This document shows, piece by piece, positions 3,266-29,329 of a stretch of DNA of 64,000 nt. How positions within the stretch are numbered: position 1 is the stretch's first letter; each line of letters opens with the position of its first letter. The notes beneath the pieces were generated by a model, which had not been told where the DNA came from, ran no database searches, and saw only the letters and a program-made list of their open reading frames with translations. A program made the translations under genes and the position numbers. The DNA is taken from sequence record MZ574432.2. One strand, given 5' to 3'.

Positions 3266-3446
3266 CCCGGCGCCCCCTCCCCAGGGCGCCGGGTTTTTCC
3301 TGGCGCCCAGCCGTTAAGGTTAACCCGGCGTTAAGGTTAACGCCCCATTAGGGTTAACGCCGCGTTAGGGTTAATCGGCCATTAACCCTCCAGGCGAAAA
3401 TAGTGCAAGAAAGCGGTTGACTGCATATCAGGCCTATGCGACAAGA
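3266..3446 (+). promoter_or_regulatory. cassette control element: terminator + four tandem CtrA-like boxes + early promoter
   Basis: CCCGGCGCCC..GGGCGCCGGG-T5 hairpin; TTAA-N7-TTA(A/G) four times at 17-bp period (3312-3386); GCAAGAAAGCGGTTGACTGCAT..TATGCGAC. Confidence 0.8.
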
Positions 3447-3472
3447 GGGCGTCCCCAACGAGGAGGCCTCTC

Positions 3473-4108
3473 ATGGCTCTGCCGGAACACCTTTTCATCG
3501 CCGATCACGGCGACCTCTACGATACCCGCGTCGAAGGCTGGAGCGCCAAGGCGCCCCTGCGCCGCGCCTATCGCGTCGCCCTGCCCAAAATCGAGAGCAT
3601 GGGCCACGTCAAGGCCGCGCTGCGCTATGGCGACACGACTGACCTGGGCGGCTATCCGCTCTACTTCGTCACGCGCGATGGCGCGGCGCTGTCGTTCGAG
3701 AGCGCCCGCAAGATGCTCTATCAGATCGCGCTCGACTTCCAAGCCGACGCCTCGACCGGCTGGCGCATCGCCGCCGTCCAGATCAACTATGAGGACGGCG
3801 ACTTGCGTTGCGATCATAGTGGCGAGCGCATCCCCTGCGCCTACAATGACCCCGAAGTCATGGCCTGGGCGAGCGGCTCCAACGTGTCGGGCTTCATGCC
3901 GGACAACGAGCCTTCCCATCATGCGACCTGGGAAGAGGCCCGCGACGCGCTCAAGCAAGACATCGAATTCGCGCGCGAGGCCTGCGAGGAGGGGAGCGAG
4001 GAGGACGGCCAATTCGCCCACGTCCTCGACGTCCTGGCCACGCTCCAAGAGGGCGCGGAATTCAACTACGGCGCCAACGGTTACCGTTGGTGGGTCGAAA
4101 AGCTCTAG
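3473..4108 (+). CDS. early hypothetical protein (211 aa)
   Basis: GAGGAGG SD; GGYPLYF and CDHSGERIPCAY motifs typical of conserved phage hypothetical proteins. Confidence 0.8.
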   Translation: MALPEHLFIADHGDLYDTRVEGWSAKAPLRRAYRVALPKIESMGHVKAALRYGDTTDLGGYPLYFVTRDGAALSFESARKMLYQIALDFQADASTGWRIAAVQINYEDGDLRCDHSGERIPCAYNDPEVMAWASGSNVSGFMPDNEPSHHATWEEARDALKQDIEFAREACEEGSEEDGQFAHVLDVLATLQEGAEFNYGANGYRWWVEKL

Positions 4109-4122
4109 CGAAAGGAACGCCC

Positions 4123-4269
4123 ATGTTCATCCTGATTGTCGGCAATCCCGTCGATGGCTACGCCTATTATGGTCCCTTCCATGACCATGACGATGCGACC
4201 AACTATGCCGAGAACACCGGCACGGAAGGAAACCCTTGGTGGGTCGCGCCGCTTGAAGAGGCCGAGTAA
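4123..4269 (+). CDS. early hypothetical protein (48 aa)
   Basis: MFILIVGNPVDGYAYYGPF; AAGGA SD. Confidence 0.75.
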   Translation: MFILIVGNPVDGYAYYGPFHDHDDATNYAENTGTEGNPWWVAPLEEAE

Positions 4270-4306
4270 CCCCGCGATCTAAACCCCCTTTAAGAGGAGA
4301 CCGCCC

Positions 4307-4609
4307 ATGGGCGCCGACTGTTTTGTGACCACCGCCAAGGGCAAGAACGCCAAGGAAGCGTTTCGCGACGCCGTGGACGAAGCCCAGTATAAATATGGCC
4401 ATGGTGGCTATACCGGAACCATCGCCGAAAAGCACGAATTCGCCATGGACAAGGGTTTCAAGCCCGACCCCGCGAGCGAAAAGACGGTGATCGAGCAAGC
4501 CCAAGACTACGCCTGGACCAAGGTCGAGGACGAAGACAAATATGGGCCTGCCGTGTGCCTGGACCTGGGCGAAGGTCAATTCCTGTTCTACGGCGTCGCC
4601 AAATGCTAG
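4307..4609 (+). CDS. early hypothetical protein (100 aa)
   Basis: GAGGAG SD; YGHGGYTGTIAEK motif. Confidence 0.8.
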   Translation: MGADCFVTTAKGKNAKEAFRDAVDEAQYKYGHGGYTGTIAEKHEFAMDKGFKPDPASEKTVIEQAQDYAWTKVEDEDKYGPAVCLDLGEGQFLFYGVAKC

Positions 4610-4614
4610 GCGAG

Positions 4615-4763
4615 TCCAGGCCTTCGCGGCCTGGGCTTTGCCCTCCCGCCGGCGTTAACCTTAACGCGGCATTAGGGTTAACGCCGGCCGCCCAGGCTGT
4701 TAACCACCTTGCGAAAATAGTGCAAGAAAGCTGTTGACTGCATCAAAGCCCCATGCGACAAGA
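4615..4763 (+). promoter_or_regulatory. cassette control element (terminator, CtrA-like palindrome, promoter)
   Basis: GTTAACCTTAAC-GCGGC-ATTAGGGTTAAC; GCAAGAAAGCTGTTGACTGCAT..CATGCGAC. Confidence 0.8.
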
Positions 4764-4787
4764 GGTCATCGAAACGGGAGACACCCC

Positions 4788-5339
4788 ATGACCGACAAGA
4801 CCACCGACCTGCTCTATCCGCAAACCCTGCTGGCCCAGAACCTGCCGGGTCGCCCCGGCATGCTGCCGGCCTGGATCGTGCTGCGCGACATGGGGCCGAA
4901 ATCCCATCACCGCTACGTCACCCATATGCGGCTCGAATATCCGGCCATTGACGAGGCCGGCCCGAAATACGGCTTTGACCATGGCCATTATTTCGCCGAC
5001 CTGCGCGAGGCGATCGAAGACTATAGCCAGCGCTGCGCCGATAAGGTCATGAGCGCCATGCGCCAAGCCTACGACGTACCGCGCGCGCCGGACAAGCCGC
5101 GCACCGTGACCCTGCCGCTGGGCGTGGTCCAGGCCGCCTATGGCCTGATCGACGGCAACACCTTCGACCTCAACGCCGCCACCGAGGACAAGGACTTGGT
5201 GAACGCCACCGAGGAGGCGCTTCGCGAGGCCCTGGGCTCCGATCGCTTTTTCCGCGATGTCGAAGCCGCCTCCAAGGCGCTCGCCGACGCCTACCGCGCC
5301 GCCAATCAACCGCCGGCCGAGGAGACCGCCCATGGCTGA
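4788..5339 (+). CDS. early hypothetical protein (183 aa)
   Basis: Start reassigned to MTDKTT after the conserved leader AACGGGAGACACCCC. Confidence 0.8.
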   Translation: MTDKTTDLLYPQTLLAQNLPGRPGMLPAWIVLRDMGPKSHHRYVTHMRLEYPAIDEAGPKYGFDHGHYFADLREAIEDYSQRCADKVMSAMRQAYDVPRAPDKPRTVTLPLGVVQAAYGLIDGNTFDLNAATEDKDLVNATEEALREALGSDRFFRDVEAASKALADAYRAANQPPAEETAHG

Positions 5340-5847
5340 TTATGAGGCCTATGTGGTCTTGGACAAGCGCCGTCGCCATGTGGCGACGGTGACGTTCAAA
5401 TTCACCGAAAGCCAAGTGACGGCCACCGTCGTCACGCCGTGGTCGGCGCCGGAGTCCCTGGCGCGCATCGCCAAGGTCAAGGGCTGGGTGATCGATCAAA
5501 ACCGGCTCATCGATCCTGCGACCGGCAAGGCCGTGGCCTATGTCTCCAAGGTCCAGGAGCAGACCGGCAAGGCCGGCGGCTACGGCTACGACAAGCGCGC
5601 CGCCTCGCTCGCCGGCCTCTATGTCGATGGCCACGAGATGGGCGACCATTCGTCCAGCCTCGGCGCCCCGAAAAAGCCCAAAGGCGCCGACCTCTACCCG
5701 GCCGACTTCACCCCGCCCAAGGGCTACCGGCTGGCCAACTACCAGAGCGCCACCGAGACCAAGGAAGCCGGCTATATGTCGTGTTTCCGCGAGCAAGGGC
5801 TGAACTACCTGACCGCCCTGGGCTACGACGTTATCCAGGCGCTCTAA
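5332..5847 (+). CDS. early hypothetical protein (171 aa)
   Basis: Start MADYEAY with GAGGAG SD; GKAGGYGYDK motif. Confidence 0.8.
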   Translation: MADYEAYVVLDKRRRHVATVTFKFTESQVTATVVTPWSAPESLARIAKVKGWVIDQNRLIDPATGKAVAYVSKVQEQTGKAGGYGYDKRAASLAGLYVDGHEMGDHSSSLGAPKKPKGADLYPADFTPPKGYRLANYQSATETKEAGYMSCFREQGLNYLTALGYDVIQAL

Positions 5848-5852
5848 GGCGA

Positions 5853-6016
5853 AGGCCCGCCACACCGGCGGGCTTTCTGCTGGCCCTAGGCGTTAACCTT
5901 AACCGGGCGTTAGGGTTAACGGGGCGTAAACAAACATGGTTAACGCGGCCCATGGTCAGCCCAGGCGAAAAGGTGCAAGAAAGCTGTTGACAGCATTTCG
6001 ACCCCATGCGACAAGG
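5853..6016 (+). promoter_or_regulatory. cassette control element (terminator, CtrA-like palindrome, promoter)
   Basis: GCCCGCC..GGCGGGC-TTT; GTTAACCTTAACCGGGCGTTAGGGTTAAC; ATGGTTAA half-site; promoter motif. Confidence 0.8.
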
Positions 6017-6062
6017 GGGCTCCAAACAACGCCAACGCCCCAAGCGGGCAGGGAGACACCCC

Positions 6063-6644
6063 ATGGCCCTGGTCACCGAATCCTTCGCCGTCGACATCGA
6101 CTGCACCCGCGCCCTGACCCCTGCCGAGCGGCGCGGTCTGGCCGCCGCCATCGCCCATCTGCTGGCCATCAACATCGATAAGGTCGAGCCCGAGCCGGGC
6201 GGCTACCTGACCGCCAATATCGGCCGCGTTCGCCCGGCCGGCATGACCGGCGAGGCCGGCCGCGAGGCGCGGATCAGGACCGAGGCCCTGACCAGCCTCG
6301 ACCATGACGCCCCGGTCGCCCTGACCCTGGAGTGTGGCGGCAGCGTCGATGTCATCGCCCGCTTCTACACCATGGCCGACGCCGAAACCTACCTCAACGA
6401 AAACCCGGAAATCGACCCGGTGTCGCTGAACCTGGGCTGCTACGGCATCGACGCCCCCTATGGCGTGGCCAGCGACGCCGACGCTGATAAGCTGCTCTAC
6501 GACCTGGGCTATCGCCTGCACGCCACGGCCGGCGGCTCCTGGACCTTCACCGACCCGAAGGGCTATCTCTGGGACGGCGGCGCCAAGCGTGAGGCCGTGG
6601 TCATGATCGCCCTGGCGCAAGCCGCCCAAATCGAGGAGGCGTAA
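6063..6644 (+). CDS. early hypothetical protein (193 aa)
   Basis: Start MALVTESF after GGGAGACACCCC. Confidence 0.8.
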   Translation: MALVTESFAVDIDCTRALTPAERRGLAAAIAHLLAINIDKVEPEPGGYLTANIGRVRPAGMTGEAGREARIRTEALTSLDHDAPVALTLECGGSVDVIARFYTMADAETYLNENPEIDPVSLNLGCYGIDAPYGVASDADADKLLYDLGYRLHATAGGSWTFTDPKGYLWDGGAKREAVVMIALAQAAQIEEA

Positions 6645-6649
6645 ACGCC

Positions 6650-7075
6650 ATGACCCGCTATTCGATCATGGTCGAGGTCCAGACCCTCGCCGACAGCGAA
6701 ACCCAGGCCCGCAAGGACGTTGAATTCGCCATCATTGAGGGCCGGTTCCCCGAGCACATGAATTGGATGGTTCGCCAGAGCGCCCCTTGCGCCGGCGAGA
6801 CCGTCCAGGCCGATGACACCCCCACCCGCTGGGCGACCTTTGTCGGTCAAGCCTGGGTCCAGGGCCACAGCATGGAGGTGGACGACGCGCGCGTGCGCTA
6901 CGGGATCACCGACGCCGAATTCAACGCCAATGGCGGCGATGAGCCCGCCGACTTCGACGCCCTGGCCCAAGCCGCCCGCGCCCCGCAATGGGTCAAGGAC
7001 TGGTCAGGCCCGTTCGACGTCTATATTTCCGACATCGAGGACGGGGAAGACCCCGAGGAAGTGCGCCAGCTATGA
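6650..7075 (+). CDS. early hypothetical protein (141 aa)
   Basis: GAGGAGG SD. Confidence 0.8.
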   Translation: MTRYSIMVEVQTLADSETQARKDVEFAIIEGRFPEHMNWMVRQSAPCAGETVQADDTPTRWATFVGQAWVQGHSMEVDDARVRYGITDAEFNANGGDEPADFDALAQAARAPQWVKDWSGPFDVYISDIEDGEDPEEVRQL

Positions 7076-7623
7076 AACGCCGCCACAGCCTTTATTTGCT
7101 GGTGATCAACACCGGCCCCCTGGTGATCCTCCAGGCGCCGGCCGATTTCCTGCGCTGGGACATCCACCGCGCCGCCATCCTGCGCATGATGCGCCGTGAC
7201 CATGGCGTCAAGGCCAAGGACGTTCACGCCATCGAAGGCCTCGCCGGCTCGCCCTACGGCGCCGACGATGACCGCGAGGCCCTGGGCAAGCTCAAGGAAA
7301 CCTTCGCGGGCCTGCGCCACGGCTTCGCCGCCTTCCACCTCTACACCTGGGACGGCAAGGACTATCAGCCCTTGCGCGAGCCCCTGACGCGCCCGCAAGG
7401 CCTTGTTCGCCTCCTAGGCCCCTATCCGCCGCCGAGCGGCGTCTATGGGCCGCACGCGCGCAAGACCGCCTCCCACGTCTATCAGGTCTTCAACGCCGAT
7501 GGCGTCAAGCTGGTGGGCGGCTCGTTCGGCCCCGATCCTGACGCGGCCCTGGCCTATGCCCGCGCCCAAGCCGCCGCCAAGGGCTACCCTGACCCGGCGG
7601 TCGAGATCGTCACCCCGAATTAA
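7072..7623 (+). CDS. early hypothetical protein (183 aa)
   Basis: ATGA overlap with the upstream stop; MKRRHSLYLL. Confidence 0.75.
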   Translation: MKRRHSLYLLVINTGPLVILQAPADFLRWDIHRAAILRMMRRDHGVKAKDVHAIEGLAGSPYGADDDREALGKLKETFAGLRHGFAAFHLYTWDGKDYQPLREPLTRPQGLVRLLGPYPPPSGVYGPHARKTASHVYQVFNADGVKLVGGSFGPDPDAALAYARAQAAAKGYPDPAVEIVTPN

Positions 7624-7666
7624 ATGCAAGAAAACTGTTGACAGCCTTTCGGGGCCATGCGAGAAC
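7624..7666 (+). promoter_or_regulatory. early promoter motif without a CtrA-like box
   Basis: GCAAGAAAACTGTTGACAGCCT..CATGCGAG. Confidence 0.7.
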
Positions 7667-7738
7667 AAGGCTCAAGACGAGACAAGAGACAGCCAAGAGG
7701 AGGACATCATGAAGTAGCGACAATCTGGAGCACACCTC

Positions 7739-8197
7739 ATGAATGTATTCGTCCGCGACGATCTTTTTCAAACCGATCTCGACGAGTGTGGTGACCCGCT
7801 TCTGGGTCGCGTCTTCTACGTCGTTGTCGAGGATCAGAACGGCGCCCGCATCGCCCACGATCGTTGTTTCTACGATCACCGGCGCGTCACCGATGAGGAT
7901 GGCTTCGCCTTCTGGCAAGCCCTCTCTTACGAAGACGTCGCCGCCGAGGAAGCCAAGGCGAAAGCCCTGGCCGCCAAGATCGAGAGCCATCTGGCGCGGG
8001 GCGGCGCCCTGGACCCCGAGCACTGGCGAGACATCGACCCGTGCTATGGCTCCAAGGCCTATGCCGATCTCGACCGGTTCGGCTACTTCCTGGCCAAGGA
8101 ACGGGCCGCCGACCGCGATCGAGGCGAGAACGTCCCTGACAGCCCTTGGGACGGCATCGCCGCCATGGTCGATGGCCCCAACTGGTTCGACCGCTGA
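7739..8197 (+). CDS. early hypothetical protein (152 aa)
   Basis: GGAG SD; DPCYGS.AY motif; preceded by an in-frame ATG-AAG-TAG mini-ORF. Confidence 0.8.
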   Translation: MNVFVRDDLFQTDLDECGDPLLGRVFYVVVEDQNGARIAHDRCFYDHRRVTDEDGFAFWQALSYEDVAAEEAKAKALAAKIESHLARGGALDPEHWRDIDPCYGSKAYADLDRFGYFLAKERAADRDRGENVPDSPWDGIAAMVDGPNWFDR

Positions 8198-8203
8198 TCT
8201 TAA

Positions 8204-8343
8204 GGCCTCGCCACCCGGCGGGGCCTTTTGACCACCGCCTGGGCGTTAACCTTAACCGCCCGTTAGGGTTAACCCCGTCGCGCCCGGCGTTAACCCTGTG
8301 GCGCAAGAAAGCTGTTGACAGCATATCAGCCCCATGCGACAAG
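8204..8343 (+). promoter_or_regulatory. cassette control element
   Basis: Hairpin + T4; GTTAACCTTAACCGCCCGTTAGGGTTAAC; promoter motif. Confidence 0.8.
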
Positions 8344-8370
8344 AGCCCATCACAACGAAGGAGGTCGCCC

Positions 8371-9048
8371 ATGGGCGCCGGCATTTCAAAGACCGCACTG
8401 AACGCCCGCGTTCGGCGCCGCCTGCAAAACTTCGCCCACGCCAACGGTGGGACCTACGCCAAATATCAGGCCCAAGGCGTCAAGGACGGCCTGCCCTGGA
8501 CCAAGGGCGTCAACGTACTTCGCGCCTCCAATGGCGAGACCTTTGGCCTTGACTGCATCGTCATCGGTCAGGGCGAGGCCGCCCGCCCCTACGGCTTTTC
8601 CGACCTCGATAGCGCGATCCTGGCCTATCGCCTGGACGAGGCCGAAACCGGCGCGGCGATCTTCGCGGGCCAGCGCGGCGATTACAAGCGCTTGATCGGC
8701 CGGCGTAGCCCGTTCATCCAGACCTGGGGCTTTGACTATTGCCTCGCCCTGGAGTTGGACGACGGCGGGTTTACGCTCTTTCGCCCGAACGGGACCATGC
8801 TTCCCTTCCGGGGCGAGGCCGCCGACAGTTGGGCGCGTGAGCTTTGGGTTCTGTTGCCCAAGGTCTACCGCCGCCACGACGAGCGCAAGCCGCTCTATCG
8901 CAGCGAGGCGATCGCCCAAGCCCAGGCCCTGGACCTGTGGGCCAGCCAGTTCGCCGACGAGGATTGGACCACCGCCGGGGATGACTGGCGCGGCAAGCCC
9001 GACCACTACAAAGGCCCCCGCAACCTGCCCCACGGCGACCCGCTCTAG
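8371..9048 (+). CDS. early hypothetical protein (225 aa)
   Basis: Start MGAGISK with AAGGAGG SD. Confidence 0.8.
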   Translation: MGAGISKTALNARVRRRLQNFAHANGGTYAKYQAQGVKDGLPWTKGVNVLRASNGETFGLDCIVIGQGEAARPYGFSDLDSAILAYRLDEAETGAAIFAGQRGDYKRLIGRRSPFIQTWGFDYCLALELDDGGFTLFRPNGTMLPFRGEAADSWARELWVLLPKVYRRHDERKPLYRSEAIAQAQALDLWASQFADEDWTTAGDDWRGKPDHYKGPRNLPHGDPL

Positions 9049-9097
9049 CCAGAGGATCACCCAGGCCCCGCGCCTGGGTTCGATCCTTGCCGCGTCC

Positions 9098-9177
9098 GTT
9101 AACCCTAACACGGCGTTAAGGTTGACAAAAATAAATGCAAGAAAGCTGTTGACAGCATCGAAGCCACATGCGACAAG
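9098..9177 (+). promoter_or_regulatory. cassette control element
   Basis: GTTAACCCTAACACGGCGTTAAGGTTGAC; promoter motif. Confidence 0.8.
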
Positions 9178-9202
9178 AGGTCATCGAAACGGGAGACACC
9201 CC

Positions 9203-9703
9203 ATGAACGACCAATATCCGCCCCTGACCGATGGCCAGCAAGCGGCCCTGGTCGCCTTCGCCGACCAGCATGGCGGCCTGGGCGAGGCCTGGAAGGAAGC
9301 CCTCGGCGACGCCTGGAGGACGTGCAGCGAGCCCGAGGCCCTCAAGGCCGACCTGCGAACCATCCGCAACACCTATGGCCCCTCCTGGCTCTATGATGAA
9401 TATGCCTGGGGCTGGCGCCCGACCCTGCCGGAGTGGGAGCGCGCCGGGCGCTGGACCGACACCCCGCCGCAGCCGACGCCGGGCAAGGCCCGCTGGAGCG
9501 CGTCGTTCGACCCGCCGGCCATCGGCGAGCGCGTCCGGGTGACCACCAACGGCCTGGGCTGGGCGAGGGTCACCGGCTACTTCGTCGAAGGCGACTGGCT
9601 GGGCGTGATCGTCAAGCTTGAAGCCCCGGCCGACTGGTATGTCAAGCAGAACGGCGGCAACGTCCCCGGCCACAGCTTCGGAACCGAAATCGCCCTGGAT
9701 TAA
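9203..9703 (+). CDS. early hypothetical protein (166 aa)
   Basis: Start MNDQYPPL after the conserved leader AACGGGAGACACCCC. Confidence 0.8.
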   Translation: MNDQYPPLTDGQQAALVAFADQHGGLGEAWKEALGDAWRTCSEPEALKADLRTIRNTYGPSWLYDEYAWGWRPTLPEWERAGRWTDTPPQPTPGKARWSASFDPPAIGERVRVTTNGLGWARVTGYFVEGDWLGVIVKLEAPADWYVKQNGGNVPGHSFGTEIALD

Positions 9704-9770
9704 CCATCTGGGACTAGCCTGGGCGGCCCTGGCTGGGAAACCAGCCGGGGCGCAAGGCCGCCGGCCGGCG

Positions 9771-9890
9771 TTAAGGTTAACCTCTCTCGCCCGGCAGTTA
9801 AGGTTAAACCCGCCGCCCAGGCCGTTAACCAAGGCGCCCAAGAAAGTGCAAGAAAGCTGTTGACAAGCATCTAGGCCACATGCGACAAGA
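9771..9890 (+). promoter_or_regulatory. cassette control element
   Basis: GTTAAGGTTAAC twice plus promoter motif. Confidence 0.75.
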
Positions 9891-9914
9891 GGGCATCACA
9901 ACGGGAGACACCCC

Positions 9915-10769
9915 ATGACCACCGCCCCGCGCCTGTTCGCCGATCTCGACGACCTCGCCAAGACCACCTATGTCGTCCGCATCGTCGACAACGGCGGCGA
10001 GAGCGCCGACCGTTACACGATCGTCACCGCCGACGGCGACTATTACGCCTACAGCGCCAACCCCGGCCATCCCCAAGGCGTGGGCCTGTCGGGCGAAGGC
10101 ATCGACCCCCAAGTGCTGGCCACCTGGGTTGAGCGCGGCGAGGCCGTGGACCTCACCCTAGGCGAGCTTCCCGAGGCCGCCGCAAGGTGCCTGCTGGGCT
10201 CGCTGAACCAGTCTTTCGAGGACTTCCTGAAAGCCGTCGAGGACGGCGCCCGCGACGCCGTGGCCCCGACTCGCGAAAAGGCCTCGATCCATGACGGCTC
10301 TTACGACTCGTTCGGCAAGGGCCTCTATCGGGTCGGTGAGGCCCTGGCCATCCGCCGCGACGGCGACGACGCGGGCGACGATCTAGGCCCCTACATGACC
10401 GCCGTCGAGGCGGTCAAGAACACCCTCCCCGATGAATACGCCTTCGCCGGCGAGGAATATCTGTCGCCCCGCGACATGACCTTGACCGAGCCGGTCGCCA
10501 AGCCGCTGGCCCTGGTCCACGCCCTGGAGGCCATTCGTGACTATGAATATCAGCGCGACAACCCCGGCTCGTTCTTCGACGGCCTCAACGAGGACGACAC
10601 TGACGCGGGCCTGGGGACCGATCGCCGTATCGCCTACCTCAACGCCGTGACCAGTGATGCGCGCATCGTGTCGCGGATCGGCGAGGCCGACGCCCTGGCC
10701 CTGGCCCATGAGTGCCTCGCCGAACTGTGGACCCTCGCCCAAGAGCGTTGGGAAGAGGCCAAGGCCTAA
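9915..10769 (+). CDS. early hypothetical protein (284 aa)
   Basis: Conserved leader; DNGGESADRYT motif. Confidence 0.85.
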   Translation: MTTAPRLFADLDDLAKTTYVVRIVDNGGESADRYTIVTADGDYYAYSANPGHPQGVGLSGEGIDPQVLATWVERGEAVDLTLGELPEAAARCLLGSLNQSFEDFLKAVEDGARDAVAPTREKASIHDGSYDSFGKGLYRVGEALAIRRDGDDAGDDLGPYMTAVEAVKNTLPDEYAFAGEEYLSPRDMTLTEPVAKPLALVHALEAIRDYEYQRDNPGSFFDGLNEDDTDAGLGTDRRIAYLNAVTSDARIVSRIGEADALALAHECLAELWTLAQERWEEAKA

Positions 10770-10782
10770 GACTCCTGCATCG

Positions 10783-10925
10783 CCCCGGCCTCATCGCCGG
10801 GGCGTCTTTTTGACCACCGCCTGGGGTTAACCCTAACGCGACGTTAAGGTTAACCCCGGCGGCCCAGGCCTTAACCATCTTTTCCCGCAAGAAAGCTGTT
10901 GACGGCATGGCATGGACATGCGATG
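10783..10925 (+). promoter_or_regulatory. cassette control element
   Basis: Hairpin + T5; GTTAACCCTAACGCGACGTTAAGGTTAAC; promoter motif. Confidence 0.8.
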
Positions 10926-10957
10926 TCACAGAAACACCGAACGGGAGACACCCCCTC

Positions 10958-11992: not shown

Positions 11993-12321
11993 CCGAATGG
12001 GCCAAGGGGCGCGGTCTACAGCATCAAAACGTGTCCGCCGTGGCGCGTGGCGACACCGTGCCGCAAACCTCGATCGCCACGGCCCTGGGCTTGCGCCGGG
12101 TGACCATCCAAGCCTATCTGGCGCCCAGTGAAGCCCTGCCCCTGCTTCCGCCGGGCTGGGAAGAGGTGCAGCCCGGATCGGCGACCCCGGTCGGCTGGAC
12201 CCCTCGCGACAAGGCCGCCCAACCCATCCCGCAAAGCGGTTCGGCCGATCGCGCCGCCCGCGCCCGCGCCATCCGCCTGGAGCGGCTGCGAAACGAAAAA
12301 GAAATGCGAGAAAGCCGTTGA
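11927..12321 (+). pseudogene. frameshifted XRE/Cro-like helix-turn-helix gene
   Basis: GGAGGT SD + MALNTAGLVARLREVLAAA, continuing in the -1 frame as SLTEWAKGRGLQHQNVSAVARGDTVPQTSIATALGLRRV. Confidence 0.55.
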
Positions 12322-12346
12322 CAGCATAACAAGGCCATGCGACAAA
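12305..12346 (+). promoter_or_regulatory. early promoter motif without a CtrA-like box
   Basis: GCGAGAAAGCCGTTGACAGCAT..CATGCGAC. Confidence 0.7.
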
Positions 12347-12371
12347 GCCTCATCAACTGAGGAGCGCCGCC

Positions 12372-12590: not shown

Positions 12591-12604
12591 AAGGAGGGCG
12601 TTCC

Positions 12605-18551: not shown

Positions 18552-18578
18552 AGGCTCATCACAACAGGGACACCCGCC

Positions 18579-20036: not shown

Positions 20037-20161
20037 GGTTAACGCCGTGTCGGGTTTTTGTAACCTTAACGCCCTGTTAAGGTTAACGAAAAAGGCCCTT
20101 TCCGTTAACCACGAATAATGCGAGAAAGCTGTTGACACGCATCGCAGCCCCATGCGACAAA
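20037..20161 (+). promoter_or_regulatory. cassette control element
   Basis: TAACCTTAACGCCCTGTTAAGGTTAAC; promoter motif. Confidence 0.8.
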
Positions 20162-21581: not shown

Positions 21582-21722
21582 AGGCCCGCCTCACCGGCGG
21601 GCCTTTTTCTCGCCAGCCCACGTTAACCTTAACGCCGCGTTAGGGTTAACGGCGGGCCGGTTTTCGTTAACCAAAGAAAATGCAAGAAACCTGTTGACTG
21701 ACATCTTGGTCCTATGCGACAA
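21582..21722 (+). promoter_or_regulatory. cassette control element
   Basis: GGCCCGCC..GGCGGGCC-T5; GTTAACCTTAACGCCGCGTTAGGGTTAAC; promoter motif. Confidence 0.8.
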
Positions 21723-21749
21723 AGGCTCATCACCAACGGGAACGCTCCC

Positions 21750-22148
21750 ATGACCCAAGACCTGACCACCGAAGAACGCAACGCCAAGCGCGCCGAAATG
21801 GCCGATCACTGGCGCGAGCAACTCAAGGTCGCCCAGGCTCGCCTTGACATGACCGTGCTGGTCGGCAAGGGCTTTATCTGCGCCCTGGAACGCGATCAAT
21901 CGATGGCGATCCGCGCCGATGGTCCCGACCGCTATCGCCTGTGGCCGGTGTCGGCGCACCTGACCCACCTCCTCCACTTCACCAAGCTTGACGCCATGCG
22001 GACCGCCGCCCATTGGAACGCGGGCCTCCCCGACGACAAGCAAGACCTGCGAGTGAGCGCCATCCACTACCGCGACGCGCTCAAAACCTTCGTGGAAGTG
22101 GCCAAGTCGCAAATCGCCTGGATCGAAGGCGGCTGCAAGGCGGCCTGA
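21750..22148 (+). CDS. early hypothetical protein (132 aa), copy 1
   Basis: Start MTQDLTTEE. Confidence 0.8.
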   Translation: MTQDLTTEERNAKRAEMADHWREQLKVAQARLDMTVLVGKGFICALERDQSMAIRADGPDRYRLWPVSAHLTHLLHFTKLDAMRTAAHWNAGLPDDKQDLRVSAIHYRDALKTFVEVAKSQIAWIEGGCKAA

Positions 22149-22177
22149 TCTTGACGCCCTCCGGCTCCGGCCGGAGG

Positions 22178-22336
22178 GTTAATTTTTGGCCAGCCTGCAT
22201 TAACCTTAACGCGCAACCGTTCTCAGGTTAACCTTAACGTGAAAACGGTTGCAGGTTAACCTTAACCCCGCCTGCCCAGGCCTTAACCAAACCACGTGAG
22301 AAAACTGTTGACTCGCATCTAGGCCCCATGCGACAA
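22178..22336 (+). promoter_or_regulatory. cassette control element with multiple TTAACCTTAAC motifs
   Basis: Three (A/G)TTAACCTTAAC copies plus promoter motif; repeated at 23607-23765. Confidence 0.75.
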
Positions 22337-22364
22337 GGTGACATCGACAACCGGAGGCCCTTCC

Positions 22365-23021
22365 ATGGCCAGCCCTGAAGACATCGCCACCGTCCAAGCC
22401 GCCGCCGTCTCTTTCGACCTGGAAGCGTGGGAAGCGGAAAAAGGCGAGTATGCCGAGGCTCATTGGCGGTATCTGAACCCCGCCTTTGAAATCGAGACCT
22501 ATTCGCACATGTTCAGCCAAGCCGAACGCGACGCCGCGCGCCGTCTCATCGAAGAATATGAGACCGCCCAGACCGATCATCAAGGCACCTATGTTGACGA
22601 AAGCGCCGCGCTCATCGCCAGCGCCGACGCCTTCACCCGCCAATATATCGCCAGCGCGGTTTGGACCGGCGTCGAGTTGCCCTATGGCGACGACCGCGCC
22701 GACAGCGGCGGCGCCTATGACCTCGAAGAGGATTCGATCATCCCCGCCACGCTGCGCGACATGATCGAAGATTGCGCCACCTTCCAACGCGACAACGCCG
22801 ACACCCTGGCCAAGGCCTATGAGTCGGACGTGTATATTCAAGGCGAGCGCTACAACGCCAGCAACGCGGGGCACGATTTTTGGCTGACCCGCAACGGCCA
22901 TGGCGCGGGCTTTTGGGATCGCGGCCTAGAAGAGGTCGGCGAGGCCCTGACCAAGGCCTGCAAGGCGTTCGGGGAATACTATCTCGCCATGAGCGACAAC
23001 GGCGAAATCTCCAAGATGTGA
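22365..23021 (+). CDS. conserved phage protein (218 aa), copy 1
   Basis: AGHDFWLTRNGHGAGFWDR motif. Confidence 0.8.
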   Translation: MASPEDIATVQAAAVSFDLEAWEAEKGEYAEAHWRYLNPAFEIETYSHMFSQAERDAARRLIEEYETAQTDHQGTYVDESAALIASADAFTRQYIASAVWTGVELPYGDDRADSGGAYDLEEDSIIPATLRDMIEDCATFQRDNADTLAKAYESDVYIQGERYNASNAGHDFWLTRNGHGAGFWDRGLEEVGEALTKACKAFGEYYLAMSDNGEISKM

Positions 23022-23178
23022 CGATCAAGGCCCGCGCTTGACGCGGGCCTTTTTCTGCCCCGTCCGGGTTAACCTTAACGCCGGGCGACTTTCCGTTAAC
23101 CGAAGAAAATGCAAGAAACCTGTTGACTCGCATCTTGGTCCTATGCGACAAAGGCTCATCACCAACGGGAACGCTCCC

Positions 23179-23577
23179 ATGACCCAAGACCTGACCACCG
23201 AAGAACGCAACGCCAAGCGCGCCGAAATGGCCGATCACTGGCGCGAGCAACTCAAGGTCGCCCAGGCTCGCCTTGACATGACCGTGCTGGTCGGCAAGGG
23301 CTTTATCTGCGCCCTGGAACGCGATCAATCGATGGCGATCCGCGCCGATGGTCCCGACCGCTATCGCCTGTGGCCGGTGTCGGCGCACCTGACCCACCTC
23401 CTCCACTTCACCAAGCTTGACGCCATGCGGACCGCCGCCCATTGGAACGCGGGCCTCCCCGACGACAAGCAAGACCTGCGAGTGAGCGCCATCCACTACC
23501 GCGACGCGCTCAAAACCTTCGTGGAAGTGGCCAAGTCGCAAATCGCCTGGATCGAAGGCGGCTGCAAGGCGGCCTGA
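23179..23577 (+). CDS. early hypothetical protein (132 aa), copy 2
   Basis: Identical to 21750-22148. Confidence 0.8.
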   Translation: MTQDLTTEERNAKRAEMADHWREQLKVAQARLDMTVLVGKGFICALERDQSMAIRADGPDRYRLWPVSAHLTHLLHFTKLDAMRTAAHWNAGLPDDKQDLRVSAIHYRDALKTFVEVAKSQIAWIEGGCKAA

Positions 23578-23793
23578 TCTTGACGCCCTCCGGCTCCGGC
23601 CGGAGGGTTAATTTTTGGCCAGCCTGCATTAACCTTAACGCGCAACCGTTCTCAGGTTAACCTTAACGTGAAAACGGTTGCAGGTTAACCTTAACCCCGC
23701 CTGCCCAGGCCTTAACCAAACCACGTGAGAAAACTGTTGACTCGCATCTAGGCCCCATGCGACAAGGTGACATCGACAACCGGAGGCCCTTCC

Positions 23794-24450
23794 ATGGCCA
23801 GCCCTGAAGACATCGCCACCGTCCAAGCCGCCGCCGTCTCTTTCGACCTGGAAGCGTGGGAAGCGGAAAAAGGCGAGTATGCCGAGGCTCATTGGCGGTA
23901 TCTGAACCCCGCCTTTGAAATCGAGACCTATTCGCACATGTTCAGCCAAGCCGAACGCGACGCCGCGCGCCGTCTCATCGAAGAATATGAGACCGCCCAG
24001 ACCGATCATCAAGGCACCTATGTTGACGAAAGCGCCGCGCTCATCGCCAGCGCCGACGCCTTCACCCGCCAATATATCGCCAGCGCGGTTTGGACCGGCG
24101 TCGAGTTGCCCTATGGCGACGACCGCGCCGACAGCGGCGGCGCCTATGACCTCGAAGAGGATTCGATCATCCCCGCCACGCTGCGCGACATGATCGAAGA
24201 TTGCGCCACCTTCCAACGCGACAACGCCGACACCCTGGCCAAGGCCTATGAGTCGGACGTGTATATTCAAGGCGAGCGCTACAACGCCAGCAACGCGGGG
24301 CACGATTTTTGGCTGACCCGCAACGGCCATGGCGCGGGCTTTTGGGATCGCGGCCTAGAAGAGGTCGGCGAGGCCCTGACCAAGGCCTGCAAGGCGTTCG
24401 GGGAATACTATCTCGCCATGAGCGACAACGGCGAAATCTCCAAGATGTGA
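23794..24450 (+). CDS. conserved phage protein (218 aa), copy 2
   Basis: Identical to 22365-23021. Confidence 0.8.
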   Translation: MASPEDIATVQAAAVSFDLEAWEAEKGEYAEAHWRYLNPAFEIETYSHMFSQAERDAARRLIEEYETAQTDHQGTYVDESAALIASADAFTRQYIASAVWTGVELPYGDDRADSGGAYDLEEDSIIPATLRDMIEDCATFQRDNADTLAKAYESDVYIQGERYNASNAGHDFWLTRNGHGAGFWDRGLEEVGEALTKACKAFGEYYLAMSDNGEISKM

Positions 24451-24454
24451 CGAT

Positions 24455-24579
24455 CAAGGCCCGCGCTTGACGCGGGCCTTTTTCTGCCCCGTCCGGGTTA
24501 ACCTTAACGCCGGGCGACTTTCCGTTAACCGAAGAAAATGCAAGAAACCTGTTGACTCGCATCTTCGTTATATGCGAAC
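24455..24579 (+). promoter_or_regulatory. cassette control element
   Basis: GGCCCGCG..CGCGGGCC-T5; GGTTAACCTTAAC; promoter variant TTGACTCGCAT..TATGCGAAC. Confidence 0.75.
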
Positions 24580-25263: not shown

Positions 25264-25365
25264 GGCGCGCCCTGGCCAGCGAAAAAAAGTGCCGTCAACG
25301 CAAGAAAGGCGTTGACGGCATAATCGCTATATGCGACAAAGGCTCATCGGCAACGGAGACACGCC

Positions 25366-25560
25366 ATGACCTTCCACCACAACCTGATGAGCAAGCTGGA
25401 CGCGGCCCAAATGGCGGGCGAAATGACCTACGCCCAACACGCCGACATGCGCGCCACGCTGCGGGCCTCCAACATGCGCGGTCAAGTCTTCACCTCGATG
25501 GATGAACTGCGCAAGGCCTGCAAGGGCGCCGGTCGCGACTTCCAAGGCCGGTTCGCCTAA
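25366..25560 (+). CDS. gene A (64 aa), copy 1
   Basis: MTFHHNLMSK; GGAG SD. Confidence 0.8.
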   Translation: MTFHHNLMSKLDAAQMAGEMTYAQHADMRATLRASNMRGQVFTSMDELRKACKGAGRDFQGRFA

Positions 25561-25580
25561 GACCCCCTCCCCTGAGAGGC

Positions 25581-25766
25581 CCGCCCTAGAGGCGGGCTTT
25601 TTCTTGGCCGTTAGCCTCTCGTTAAGGTTAATCCCCAGGCCCTCTGGGGTTAACCTTAACGCGGCGTTAAGGTTAACCCCGGCGGCCCAGGCCTTAACCA
25701 TGGCAAGGAAAAAAGATCGCTTTCCTGCGAGAAAGCTGTTGACCGCATAAAGGCAATATGCGACAA
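25581..25766 (+). promoter_or_regulatory. terminator + CtrA-like boxes + promoter (recurs in each 885-bp unit)
   Basis: GCCCGCC..GGCGGGC-T5; perfect GGGGTTAACCTTAAC-GCGGC-GTTAAGGTTAACCCC palindrome; promoter motif. Confidence 0.85.
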
Positions 25767-25790
25767 AGGGTCATCAACGGAGCTAGTCCA

Positions 25791-25961
25791 ATGTCCTTCC
25801 GCCTCGCCCTTACCGAAGACGCCCGCTTCACCGCCGCCCGTGGCGCGGTCCGCACCGTCCGCGAGCAAGCCCGCCCGGCGCCGCACAAGGACATTGACGG
25901 CAAGGCCCTGCTGGCGCCCGCCTCGGCGCTGGACCGCATCCGCGCCGTTCTCGGGAACTGA
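25791..25961 (+). CDS. gene B (56 aa), copy 1
   Basis: Start MSFRLAL after GGAG. Confidence 0.7.
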   Translation: MSFRLALTEDARFTAARGAVRTVREQARPAPHKDIDGKALLAPASALDRIRAVLGN

Positions 25962-25964
25962 GTC

Positions 25965-26156
25965 ATGAAGGTCATCGCGCACTATGCCAACGGCCTGCAA
26001 CGGGTCATCCCCTGCGAGACCTCGCAAGAGGCTGTGGCCGCGATCAAGGCGGCTCTGACCTATGATCGCGCCGCCAAGTTCACGCTTGACAAGCGCCTTG
26101 CCTCGGCGATCCCGACCCGCGCCGCCTCCGAACGGGTTTGGCTGTTGAGCGCGTGA
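25965..26156 (+). CDS. gene C (63 aa), copy 1
   Basis: ORF directly after gene B. Confidence 0.7.
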   Translation: MKVIAHYANGLQRVIPCETSQEAVAAIKAALTYDRAAKFTLDKRLASAIPTRAASERVWLLSA

Positions 26157-26250
26157 GGGCGATCGAAAAAAGATCGCCTCACCGCAAAAAACCTGTTGAC
26201 TCGCATAAGGCCCCTATGCGATAAAAGGTCATCGGCAACGGAGACACGCC

Positions 26251-26445
26251 ATGACCTTCCACCACAACCTGATGAGCAAGCTGGACGCGGCCCAAATGGC
26301 GGGCGAAATGACCTACGCCCAACACGCCGACATGCGCGCCACGCTGCGGGCCTCCAACATGCGCGGTCAAGTCTTCACCTCGATGGATGAACTGCGCAAG
26401 GCCTGCAAGGGCGCCGGTCGCGACTTCCAAGGCCGGTTCGCCTAA
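26251..26445 (+). CDS. gene A, copy 2
   Basis: Identical translation. Confidence 0.8.
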   Translation: MTFHHNLMSKLDAAQMAGEMTYAQHADMRATLRASNMRGQVFTSMDELRKACKGAGRDFQGRFA

Positions 26446-26674
26446 GACCCCTCCCCTGAGAGGCCCGCCCTAGAGGCGGGCTTTTTCTTGGCCGTTAGCC
26501 TCTCGTTAAGGTTAATCCCCAGGCCCTCTGGGGTTAACCTTAACGCGGCGTTAAGGTTAACCCCGGCGGCCCAGGCCTTAACCATGGCAAGGAAAAAAGA
26601 TCGCTTTCCTGCGAGAAAGCTGTTGACCGCATAAAGGCAATATGCGACAAAGGGTCATCAACGGAGCTAGTCCA

Positions 26675-26845
26675 ATGTCCTTCCGCCTCGCCCTTACCGA
26701 AGACGCCCGCTTCACCGCCGCCCGTGGCGCGGTCCGCACCGTCCGCGAGCAAGCCCGCCCGGCGCCGCACAAGGACATTGACGGCAAGGCCCTGCTGGCG
26801 CCCGCCTCGGCGCTGGACCGCATCCGCGCCGTTCTCGGGAACTGA
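26675..26845 (+). CDS. gene B, copy 2
   Basis: Identical translation. Confidence 0.7.
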   Translation: MSFRLALTEDARFTAARGAVRTVREQARPAPHKDIDGKALLAPASALDRIRAVLGN

Positions 26846-26848
26846 GTC

Positions 26849-27040
26849 ATGAAGGTCATCGCGCACTATGCCAACGGCCTGCAACGGGTCATCCCCTGCG
26901 AGACCTCGCAAGAGGCTGTGGCCGCGATCAAGGCGGCTCTGACCTATGATCGCGCCGCCAAGTTCACGCTTGACAAGCGCCTTGCCTCGGCGATCCCGAC
27001 CCGCGCCGCCTCCGAACGGGTTTGGCTGTTGAGCGCGTGA
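26849..27040 (+). CDS. gene C, copy 2
   Basis: Identical translation. Confidence 0.7.
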   Translation: MKVIAHYANGLQRVIPCETSQEAVAAIKAALTYDRAAKFTLDKRLASAIPTRAASERVWLLSA

Positions 27041-27134
27041 GGGCGATCGAAAAAAGATCGCCTCACCGCAAAAAACCTGTTGACTCGCATAAGGCCCCTA
27101 TGCGATAAAAGGTCATCGGCAACGGAGACACGCC

Positions 27135-27329
27135 ATGACCTTCCACCACAACCTGATGAGCAAGCTGGACGCGGCCCAAATGGCGGGCGAAATGACCTAC
27201 GCCCAACACGCCGACATGCGCGCCACGCTGCGGGCCTCCAACATGCGCGGTCAAGTCTTCACCTCGATGGATGAACTGCGCAAGGCCTGCAAGGGCGCCG
27301 GTCGCGACTTCCAAGGCCGGTTCGCCTAA
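27135..27329 (+). CDS. gene A, copy 3
   Basis: Identical translation. Confidence 0.8.
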   Translation: MTFHHNLMSKLDAAQMAGEMTYAQHADMRATLRASNMRGQVFTSMDELRKACKGAGRDFQGRFA

Positions 27330-27559
27330 GACCCCCTCCCCTGAGAGGCCCGCCCTAGAGGCGGGCTTTTTCTTGGCCGTTAGCCTCTCGTTAAGGTTAA
27401 TCCCCAGGCCCTCTGGGGTTAACCTTAACGCGGCGTTAAGGTTAACCCCGGCGGCCCAGGCCTTAACCATGGCAAGGAAAAAAGATCGCTTTCCTGCGAG
27501 AAAGCTGTTGACCGCATAAAGGCAATATGCGACAAAGGGTCATCAACGGAGCTAGTCCA

Positions 27560-27730
27560 ATGTCCTTCCGCCTCGCCCTTACCGAAGACGCCCGCTTCAC
27601 CGCCGCCCGTGGCGCGGTCCGCACCGTCCGCGAGCAAGCCCGCCCGGCGCCGCACAAGGACATTGACGGCAAGGCCCTGCTGGCGCCCGCCTCGGCGCTG
27701 GACCGCATCCGCGCCGTTCTCGGGAACTGA
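27560..27730 (+). CDS. gene B, copy 3
   Basis: Identical translation. Confidence 0.7.
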   Translation: MSFRLALTEDARFTAARGAVRTVREQARPAPHKDIDGKALLAPASALDRIRAVLGN

Positions 27731-27733
27731 GTC

Positions 27734-27925
27734 ATGAAGGTCATCGCGCACTATGCCAACGGCCTGCAACGGGTCATCCCCTGCGAGACCTCGCAAGAGG
27801 CTGTGGCCGCGATCAAGGCGGCTCTGACCTATGATCGCGCCGCCAAGTTCACGCTTGACAAGCGCCTTGCCTCGGCGATCCCGACCCGCGCCGCCTCCGA
27901 ACGGGTTTGGCTGTTGAGCGCGTGA
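27734..27925 (+). CDS. gene C, copy 3
   Basis: Identical translation. Confidence 0.7.
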   Translation: MKVIAHYANGLQRVIPCETSQEAVAAIKAALTYDRAAKFTLDKRLASAIPTRAASERVWLLSA

Positions 27926-28019
27926 GGGCGATCGAAAAAAGATCGCCTCACCGCAAAAAACCTGTTGACTCGCATAAGGCCCCTATGCGATAAAAGGTCA
28001 TCGGCAACGGAGACACGCC

Positions 28020-28214
28020 ATGACCTTCCACCACAACCTGATGAGCAAGCTGGACGCGGCCCAAATGGCGGGCGAAATGACCTACGCCCAACACGCCGAC
28101 ATGCGCGCCACGCTGCGGGCCTCCAACATGCGCGGTCAAGTCTTCACCTCGATGGATGAACTGCGCAAGGCCTGCAAGGGCGCCGGTCGCGACTTCCAAG
28201 GCCGGTTCGCCTAA
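28020..28214 (+). CDS. gene A, copy 4
   Basis: Identical translation. Confidence 0.8.
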   Translation: MTFHHNLMSKLDAAQMAGEMTYAQHADMRATLRASNMRGQVFTSMDELRKACKGAGRDFQGRFA

Positions 28215-28444
28215 GACCCCCTCCCCTGAGAGGCCCGCCCTAGAGGCGGGCTTTTTCTTGGCCGTTAGCCTCTCGTTAAGGTTAATCCCCAGGCCCTCTG
28301 GGGTTAACCTTAACGCGGCGTTAAGGTTAACCCCGGCGGCCCAGGCCTTAACCATGGCAAGGAAAAAAGATCGCTTTCCTGCGAGAAAGCTGTTGACCGC
28401 ATAAAGGCAATATGCGACAAAGGGTCATCAACGGAGCTAGTCCA

Positions 28445-28615
28445 ATGTCCTTCCGCCTCGCCCTTACCGAAGACGCCCGCTTCACCGCCGCCCGTGGCGC
28501 GGTCCGCACCGTCCGCGAGCAAGCCCGCCCGGCGCCGCACAAGGACATTGACGGCAAGGCCCTGCTGGCGCCCGCCTCGGCGCTGGACCGCATCCGCGCC
28601 GTTCTCGGGAACTGA
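28445..28615 (+). CDS. gene B, copy 4
   Basis: Identical translation. Confidence 0.7.
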   Translation: MSFRLALTEDARFTAARGAVRTVREQARPAPHKDIDGKALLAPASALDRIRAVLGN

Positions 28616-28618
28616 GTC

Positions 28619-28810
28619 ATGAAGGTCATCGCGCACTATGCCAACGGCCTGCAACGGGTCATCCCCTGCGAGACCTCGCAAGAGGCTGTGGCCGCGATCA
28701 AGGCGGCTCTGACCTATGATCGCGCCGCCAAGTTCACGCTTGACAAGCGCCTTGCCTCGGCGATCCCGACCCGCGCCGCCTCCGAACGGGTTTGGCTGTT
28801 GAGCGCGTGA
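28619..28810 (+). CDS. gene C, copy 4
   Basis: Identical translation. Confidence 0.7.
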   Translation: MKVIAHYANGLQRVIPCETSQEAVAAIKAALTYDRAAKFTLDKRLASAIPTRAASERVWLLSA

Positions 28811-28904
28811 GGGCGATCGAAAAAAGATCGCCTCACCGCAAAAAACCTGTTGACTCGCATAAGGCCCCTATGCGATAAAAGGTCATCGGCAACGGAGACA
28901 CGCC

Positions 28905-29099
28905 ATGACCTTCCACCACAACCTGATGAGCAAGCTGGACGCGGCCCAAATGGCGGGCGAAATGACCTACGCCCAACACGCCGACATGCGCGCCACGCTG
29001 CGGGCCTCCAACATGCGCGGTCAAGTCTTCACCTCGATGGATGAACTGCGCAAGGCCTGCAAGGGCGCCGGTCGCGACTTCCAAGGCCGGTTCGCCTAA
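28905..29099 (+). CDS. gene A, copy 5
   Basis: Identical translation. Confidence 0.8.
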   Translation: MTFHHNLMSKLDAAQMAGEMTYAQHADMRATLRASNMRGQVFTSMDELRKACKGAGRDFQGRFA

Positions 29100-29329
29100 G
29101 ACCCCCTCCCCTGAGAGGCCCGCCCTAGAGGCGGGCTTTTTCTTGGCCGTTAGCCTCTCGTTAAGGTTAATCCCCAGGCCCTCTGGGGTTAACCTTAACG
29201 CGGCGTTAAGGTTAACCCCGGCGGCCCAGGCCTTAACCATGGCAAGGAAAAAAGATCGCTTTCCTGCGAGAAAGCTGTTGACCGCATAAAGGCAATATGC
29301 GACAAAGGGTCATCAACGGAGCTAGTCCA

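Follow-up and report, generated by a model that had tools for sequence, protein, structure and literature searches.

Half-site arrays in the terminal repeat of Caulobacter phage BL47: candidate sites for the host regulator CtrA at the borders of early transcription units

The window analyzed here is a stretch of 64,000 nucleotides that opens the genome of the Caulobacter jumbo phage BL47 (MZ574432.2, 326,794 bp), a member of the genus Bertelyvirus whose host is Caulobacter vibrioides CB15; the segments 3000-13000 and 40000-55000 of the window are 100% identical to this record, at unchanged coordinates. About 64 small early genes and 34 host-type promoters are located in the left direct terminal repeat (DTR) of this genome, as are all arrays of a TTAA-bearing repeat unit, which is the subject of this study. 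Nearly all of the genes lie on the + strand, they are grouped into about 20 small transcription units, and every one of them is labelled 'hypothetical protein' in the record. A first-pass annotation of the DNA had drawn attention to the span 3312-29240, which is located entirely within the DTR, and had proposed that its many boxes for the cell-cycle regulator CtrA serve either cell-cycle sensing or the titration of CtrA. Arrays are indeed present in this span, but they begin earlier, with a block of units at 2250-2530 and a unit at 555.

The dominant repeat is a 12-bp double-TTAA unit, GTTAAGGTTAAC, whose two TTAA start 6 bp apart. It occurs in 63 copies in the DTR versus two in the remaining 34 kb of the window. 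With at most one mismatch allowed, the 12-mer has 110 matches in the whole record, 106 in the two DTR copies and only four across the 266 kb of unique sequence. The reversed pattern, searched as a control, has no match. Likewise, 143 of the 157 TTAA in the window fall in the DTR. Compared with shuffled sequences, the window contains 62 TTARGGTTAA (0.0 expected), ten TTAA-N7-TTAA (0.04 expected) and TTAA-N7-TTAR at 22 distinct places (0.2 expected). The canonical CtrA box, in which the TTAA starts lie 11 bp apart (hereafter N7 box), is thus present as ten exact copies, or 22 if one half-site may be TTAG/CTAA. Most of the 143 TTAA in the DTR are not part of such a box; an offset of 6 bp is found in 45 TTAA pairs, one of 11 bp in only ten exact pairs. 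When tandem duplications are collapsed, 18 TTAA-N7-TTAR boxes and 45 units remain. The dozens of TTAA-N7-TTA(A/G) sites announced by the first-pass annotation are therefore far above chance, but they amount to 22 places only, or 18 without the tandem duplicates, and it is the 12-bp unit that dominates. A full-text search of the literature for the 12-mer and its variants retrieved no relevant paper.

The 63 units are arranged in 25 arrays, all of them intergenic. Neighboring units, which may be inverted, direct or everted with respect to each other, are nearly always spaced by 17 bp or by 27/28 bp. A spacing of 17 bp brings the facing TTAA of adjacent units into a TTAA-N7-TTAA box, whereas one of 28 bp (17+11) separates them by two helical turns, so that an N7 box is not formed. 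The four tandem units with a 17-bp period reported at 3312-3386 are present. The commonest form, however, is the inverted pair at 17 bp, hereafter palindrome, of which BL47 has 12 distinct cases. Perfect inverted repeats had been claimed as well, and GGGGTTAACCTTAAC-GCGGC-GTTAAGGTTAACCCC with its 15-bp stem is found at 25646-25680; yet this is a single locus, present in five copies through an 885-bp tandem duplication, and the other 11 distinct palindromes each contain one or two arm mismatches.

These mismatches bear on the question of whether the element acts through its structure, be it as a cruciform, as a back-up terminator or processing hairpin, or as a recombination site for cassette shuffling. 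As DNA, the perfect palindrome has a folding energy of -18.1 kcal/mol (z = -6.1), the arrays are located at cassette borders, and one end of a 1429-bp duplication lies inside a palindrome. Imperfect palindromes, on the other hand, fold weakly as DNA (e.g. -8.6 kcal/mol, z = -1.9), and perfect 12-nt arms are found in only two of 29 distinct palindromes from three phages (one of 12 in BL47). Inside the arms, position 8 is often mismatched (T-G or C-A), and this mismatch is not compensated. Moreover, single arms and direct-repeat arrays substitute for palindromes at orthologous places. The conserved near-perfect symmetry around a short spacer that marks a cruciform-forming palindrome is thus not observed, and with imperfect arms and without compensating changes cruciform extrusion, which had been put forward earlier, is not supported. 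No T-run follows the palindromes either: they are succeeded by CCCCGG-type sequence, and the true terminators are found 13-18 nt upstream. We regard a structural role of the DNA or RNA as highly improbable.

The position of the arrays was assessed with respect to terminators and promoters. Because a standard terminator scan, which requires five T in eight, missed most terminators of the DTR, intergenic regions on the + strand were searched with a custom scan for GC-rich hairpins that have three or more T behind them. It detected 18 terminators. At 17 of them, the T-run is followed by a unit that starts at a distance of 13-18 nt; only the last one, at the edge of the DTR, is an exception. The sequence of the linkers between terminator and unit varies, their length does not.

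The 34 early promoters share the form TTGAC-N17/18-ATGCGACA, preceded by GCAAGAAAGCTG, and all are located on the + strand of the DTR; none was found in the remaining 34 kb of the window. They fit the Caulobacter RpoD consensus TTGaCgS / GCtANAWC (PMC8144410). Arrays stand upstream of 21 of these promoters in a roughly 10-bp register. The other 13 directly follow a gene, with no terminator in between, and have the same core consensus as the rest. In BL47 and its sister phages CcrBL9 and CcrSC, the distances from array to -35 element fall into the classes 14, 22-24, 32-36, 41-44, 51, 61-62, 66-67 and 71 nt, with a periodicity of about 10 bp in all three phages (Rayleigh R = 0.5-0.8 at 9.5-10.5 bp); the corresponding p-values are optimistic, since the cassettes share ancestry. 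TTAA starts cluster at -25/-27, -35, -47, -54, -66 and -72, counted from the initial T of the -35 element. About 12 promoters carry a lone TTAACCA(T) near -27 from the -35, which would place it at about -62 from the presumed transcription start. The arrays at 18144 and 19073 follow terminators, while the next promoter is 350 and 169 nt away, respectively; the link to the terminator is therefore at least as tight as that to the promoter. The coordinates of all features are compiled in the table.

Table. Terminal repeat, example promoter and unit arrays of BL47 (positions in the window)
Feature	Position	Strand	Remarks
Left direct terminal repeat	1-30174	+	repeat_region annotated in MZ574432.2; 30,174 bp
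Single unit	555		array material ahead of 3312
Block of ~12 units	2250-2530	+	mostly same orientation, irregular spacing 13-42 bp; in a 700-bp non-coding region
Four direct units, 17-bp period, plus terminal TTAACC half-site	3313-3385	+	14 nt past terminator; 41 nt before -35 of promoter 3417
Early promoter (example), TTGAC-N17/18-ATGCGACA	3417-3443	+	one of 34 conserved copies
Inverted unit pair (17-bp offset)	4654-4682		past terminator 4614-4639; half-site TTAACCA at 4700; promoter -35 at 4734
Inverted unit pair	5892-5920		15 nt past terminator
Inverted unit pair	8245-8273		15 nt past terminator; 41 nt before -35 at 8315
Inverted unit pair	9098-9126		22 nt before -35 at 9149
Two direct units, 27-bp offset	9770-9808	+	hence no canonical N7 box between them
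Inverted unit pair	10826-10854		TTAACCAT at 10871; promoter -35 at 10899
Inverted unit pair	13250-13278		14 nt past terminator; 43 nt before -35 at 13322
Inverted unit pair, both inner half-sites TTAA	16444-16472		
Inverted unit pair	17400-17428		24 nt before -35 at 17453
Inverted unit pair	18144-18172		15 nt past terminator; 350 nt to next + strand promoter
Inverted units, 27-bp offset	19073-19111		15 nt past terminator; 169 nt to next promoter
Inverted unit pair	20059-20087		TTAACCA at 20105; -35 at 20132
Inverted unit pair	21622-21650		at start of 1429-bp duplication
Three same-orientation units, 28-bp period, no N7 box	22199-22266	-	second copy 23628-23695
One unit and, 28 bp on, the perfect palindrome GGGGTTAACCTTAAC-GCGGC-GTTAAGGTTAACCCC (25646-25680), then TTAACCAT	25621-25700		recurs four times at +884/885 bp: 26505, 27390, 28275, 29160 (palindrome at 26530, 27415, 28300, 29185)

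The regular placement also bears on the titration of CtrA, the second function proposed earlier. In this scenario, the arrays would mainly soak up phosphorylated CtrA (CtrA~P) and thereby relieve host replication control or shut down the CtrA regulon. The supply of sites is considerable: with 2 x 143 TTAA half-sites, one phage genome is similar to the host regulon with its 54 full and 124 half sites, and once a few dozen copies have been made by replication, the sites would match the whole CtrA pool of ~10^4 molecules (PMC8640480), titration being conceivable at that stage. A single infecting genome, however, offers 286 TTAA for these ~10^4 molecules per cell, i.e. about 3% as a single-genome figure. 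Furthermore, a sponge needs neither fixed distances to terminators nor a helical register with promoters, and the sites are confined to where the early promoters are. A pure sponge, for which the number of sites should approach that of the factor and the sites should be untied to promoters, is accordingly not supported, and we consider it very unlikely.

The sister phages CcrBL9 and CcrSC, with about 80% DNA identity to BL47, possess 38 and 41 units in their DTRs, respectively, and none in the adjoining 8-18 kb. Both share the 17/28-bp unit spacing and the same early promoter with BL47. In orthologous spacers, the unit is retained while the flanks diverge, and it is whole units or 17-bp steps that are gained or lost: one locus has a single unit in CcrBL9 and a pair in BL47 and CcrSC, another a triple in CcrSC and a pair in BL47 and CcrBL9. 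Anatomy, enrichment, positioning and conservation of the arrays were read directly from the genomes. The block at 2250-2530, which adjoins iteron-like repeats and phased A/T tracts, has orthologous blocks in CcrBL9, CcrSC and also phiCbK, where the units are located at 1920-2104.

Our localization agrees with published predictions. According to Mascolo et al. 2022 (PMC9437464), predicted CtrA sites of phiCbK-like phages concentrate in the DTRs, where they are intergenic and higher-scoring, and CcrBL9, CcrBL10, CcrSC and CcrPW were placed in the DTR-concentrated group. The supplementary table of that study gives 32 predicted sites for CcrBL9 and 38 for CcrSC, the latter including those at 6006, 7072, 7747, 9487, 9504, 11604, 14275, 16330, 16347 and 17684. 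These CcrSC sites correspond to the centers of the palindromes that we located at 6001, 7067, 7742, 9482, 11599, 14270, 16325 and 17679. The published CtrA matrix scores the orthologous palindrome centers 9.6-13.6 (best site 17.2), whereby the scores are those of CcrSC and not of BL47. The same study provides experimental evidence from a relative: CtrA~P shifts probes of phiCbK gp005 and gp018 in gels, as it does for two other phages, and gp005 and gp018 reporters lose activity in a ctrA-ts strain (PMC9437464). In both phiCbK promoters, we find TTAACGGTTTGTTAAC overlapping the -35 element.

The unit is not restricted to cultured Caulobacter phages. A scan of IMG/VR for TTAAC-N5-GTTARGGTTAAC yielded 54 stretches, of which about 40 (GC content 53-60%) contain 9-26 units per ~10 kb; hence, the unit is used well beyond the cultured Caulobacter phages. 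In several of these viral contigs (L132, L154, L166 and others), units are spaced by 17, 27, 30-32 and 42-44 bp. For bacteria, the same pattern was searched in one genome per species and returned at least 120 stretches. Nearly all of the matches listed belong to Hyphomicrobiales (Rhizobium, Bradyrhizobium, Mesorhizobium, Pseudolabrys and others), and in 105 of the 120 listed, a homolog of one TPR lipoprotein gene lies downstream on the same strand. In an annotated Bradyrhizobium locus, this gene adjoins cpaD, a cpaE-like ATPase gene, cpaF and two tadB/C genes. The Hyphomicrobiales element upstream of the TPR lipoprotein gene has the form TTAAC-N5-GTTAGGGTTAAC-N4-TATTGCT and is deeply conserved (e.g. 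L025:5408-6300 and 104 further loci); no description of it was found in a literature search, and an Rfam search with six bacterial loci that carry the pattern found nothing. The recurrence at a pilus locus in 105 of 120 listed matches implies that a host-encoded alphaproteobacterial factor recognizes the pattern. Pilus genes belong to the classical Caulobacter CtrA regulon. In addition, cpaB is among the targets bound by both CtrA and the regulator SciP (Fumeaux et al. 2014, PMC4083442). The promoter of the TPR lipoprotein gene at the Tad locus may be CtrA-controlled as well.

We presume that the BL47 repeats are half-site arrays for the host CtrA, which probably couple early transcription to the cell-cycle state. 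CtrA~P, carried by swarmer cells, the cell type that such phages infect, would bind the arrays cooperatively. An array starts 13-18 nt behind the terminator of one transcription unit and stands in a register of about 10 bp upstream of the RpoD promoter of the next one, often with one further TTAACCA(T) half-site near -62 added to it. Bound CtrA~P could then link early transcription to the host cell cycle by acting on RNA polymerase from upstream, by insulating neighboring transcription units, or by both, and the outcome in BL47 could be activation or repression. CtrA~P is strongly cooperative on paired half-sites (PMC8640480), and cooperative binding is compatible with the 17/28-bp spacing of the units. 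Cell-cycle sensing through CtrA-like boxes, as suggested by the first-pass annotation, is supported by analogy, namely by the sites in the DTRs of the sister phages and by the gel shifts and reporters of phiCbK; for CtrA binding and CtrA-dependent expression we draw on this published work on relatives.

Several observations weigh against this interpretation. Most TTAA pairs are 6 bp apart and thus unusable as a canonical box by two CtrA monomers, and arrays spaced by 27/28 bp have no N7 box and were not called by the published matrix. The promoters show the full -35/-10 consensus regardless of an array, and 13 of 34 are without any; CtrA is hence not obviously needed for initiation. The boxes of phiCbK gp005 and gp018 overlap the -35 element, in contrast to BL47, and in BL47 itself both CtrA binding and an effect on expression are predictions. 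The positional statistics overstate independence because the cassettes share ancestry. Finally, in 151 genomes of a single alphaproteobacterial order, to which a Parvularculaceae genome from the bacterial pattern matches belongs, the exact 12-mer shows no enrichment: it occurs 30 times versus about 57 times for the reversed control. A few conserved promoter-like sites in this set do carry it. As a separate observation, nine genomes of this order (L192-L194, L196-L201) share GTTAAGGTTAAC followed by CAAAACCTTAATAG..GAGATCACTGA.AAAGGCTTA, another conserved site that bears the unit.

The unit might instead be the operator of a protein other than CtrA alone, either an early regulator that is encoded by the phage or delivered with the virion, or a composite of CtrA and SciP. 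The conserved element is a 12-mer and not the N7 box, the arrays spaced by 28 bp lack any N7 box, and about 12 promoters carry the proximal TTAACCA(T). The ~40 uncultivated viral contigs are compatible with a factor of the phage lineage and equally with a conserved host factor. With respect to SciP, chromatin immunoprecipitation sequencing (ChIP-seq) has revealed the motif (G/A)TTAACCAT(A/G), an extended CtrA box at late-S-phase promoters that are repressed by SciP in G1 (Fumeaux et al. 2014, PMC4083442). The unit GTTAACC(T/C)TA resembles this motif and differs from it at one position (A to T or C), and the proximal half-site TTAACCA(T) resembles it too; the likeness is one of sequence. Yet Mascolo et al. 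observed no positional asymmetry of the SciP motif in these phages (PMC9437464), and the same pattern stands at the bacterial Tad locus, where no phage protein is available. Nor was a phage gene with a recognizable DNA-binding, OmpR-type or SciP-like domain found. In the BL47 genome, the OmpR-type domain (PF00486) has no match above cut-off; below it, one match falls within a 537-aa frame from the structural region. GcrA (PF07750) has a single sub-threshold match at 279689, and SciP/DUF1153 has none. Among 30 DTR proteins compared with Pfam, no family scored above cut-off and no DNA-binding domain was detected, and among ten compared with PHROGs, no functional assignment was obtained except for a short match of gp008 to phrog_18452, labelled 'DNA ligase'. 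On balance, a different or composite binder appears unlikely, albeit conceivable.

A related and rather doubtful proposal is that the unit is a composite operator of CtrA and SciP, 13-18 nt behind weak terminators (3-5 T), where the arrays would serve as roadblocks or insulators that depend on the cell cycle. At the U-tract, the front edge of RNA polymerase would run into the bound complex. In swarmer cells, in which CtrA~P and SciP are present, each early cassette would be kept closed off; after the swarmer-to-stalked transition, both proteins would be degraded and read-through would join the cassettes. If this were true, the presence in ~40 uncultivated viral contigs would make the unit a widely used phage module.

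Apart from the arrays, the DTR shows some further peculiarities. It contains three tandem duplications, i.e. 885 bp x5.5 (25318-30041), 1429 bp x2 and 454 bp x2. Each 885-bp copy includes two promoters, a terminator and an array in addition to three small genes. The annotations of CcrBL9 and CcrSC indicate about one and a half copies, fewer than in BL47, and the 885-bp copies explain much of the excess length of the BL47 DTR over those of its sisters. The copies of the 1429-bp duplication (21635-24492) are 96% identical; copy 1 begins within an inverted unit pair, whereas the junction and the end each have a single unit only. The early promoter is nearly palindromic in all 34 cases, e.g. TTGACAGCAT-N9-ATGCGACAA at 8315-8341, the reverse complement of the -10 element being TTGTCGCAT, and it includes TGTCGC, which resembles TGTCGCG, a motif suggested for SciP at one time. 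Positions 2040-2700 form a non-coding stretch of 700 bp with the lowest GC content of the window, composed of about six TTGACGC-N5-GCATTT repeats (period 22-28 bp), followed by ~12 TTAA units and phased A/T tracts; in its sequence, it looks like an origin or a packaging region. The first of the TTGACGC-N5-GCATTT repeats are overlapped by gp005c (1655-2188, - strand), which may not be a genuine gene. The product of gp037 (18468-19022) has a sub-threshold match to the antirestriction family ArdA (PF07275, E = 3e-4, 21.7 bits; cut-off 27), and an ArdA-like identity, plausible though unproven, would suit an early gene. A search of sequencing runs for BL47 sequence matched only two runs, both from wastewater and both with 6% of the sampled words; neither was recorded as RNA.

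Among known systems, the Caulobacter chromosomal origin Cori, with its sites [a]-[e], shares clustered TTAA-N7-TTAA in non-coding DNA with BL47, and cooperative binding of CtrA~P has been shown at Cori. With iteron-like repeats and A/T tracts next to it, the block at 2250-2530 has the setting expected of an origin and is a candidate in this respect; unlike Cori, most BL47 arrays sit at gene borders and not at an origin. A more distant analogy, cited by Mascolo et al. (PMC9437464), is provided by the Spo0A boxes of the Bacillus phage phi29, a lytic phage that likewise carries sites for a master developmental regulator of its host, so that infection tracks the cell state. Regulator, host and site architecture are different, and the phi29 sites repress early promoters and replication.

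The closest counterparts are the CtrA clusters of phiCbK-like phages, named 'LPEG' and linked to lytic deferment (PMC9437464), so that the earlier statement on CtrA sites in alphaproteobacterial phages is borne out by published work. They share with BL47 the host genus, the phage subfamily and the DTR compartment, and in both cases the sites are intergenic and upstream of small genes without assigned function. The LPEG signature, i.e. intergenic sites gathered in one region, is found in BL47, as the 106 of 110 unit matches in the two DTR copies and the exclusively intergenic arrays attest. The published study did not include BL47 and scored 17-bp N7 boxes only; it is without the 12-bp double-TTAA unit, the 17/28-bp spacing, the fixed terminator distance and the promoter phasing, the 28-bp arrays are not among its calls, and it does not mention cooperativity, titration or inverted repeats. 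The concentration of CtrA sites has thus already been published for sister phages, and BL47 adds a member to that class; the additional details yield testable hypotheses, but no new class of system. Their value for specialists possibly lies in the 12-bp unit, its 17/28-bp spacing, the fixed terminator distance and the helical register with complete RpoD-type promoters. The pattern at Tad-pilus genes of Hyphomicrobiales offers a comparison on the host side. In a phiCbK-type CtrA-activated promoter, the box lies over a -35 region without a consensus of its own, as the gp005 and gp018 boxes overlap the -35, whereas BL47 has both TTGAC and ATGCGACA in place and its arrays end 14-71 nt upstream of the -35. 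This anatomy differs from that of the experimentally tested phiCbK promoters and offers precise probes of whether CtrA, alone or together with SciP, activates, represses or insulates early transcription units.

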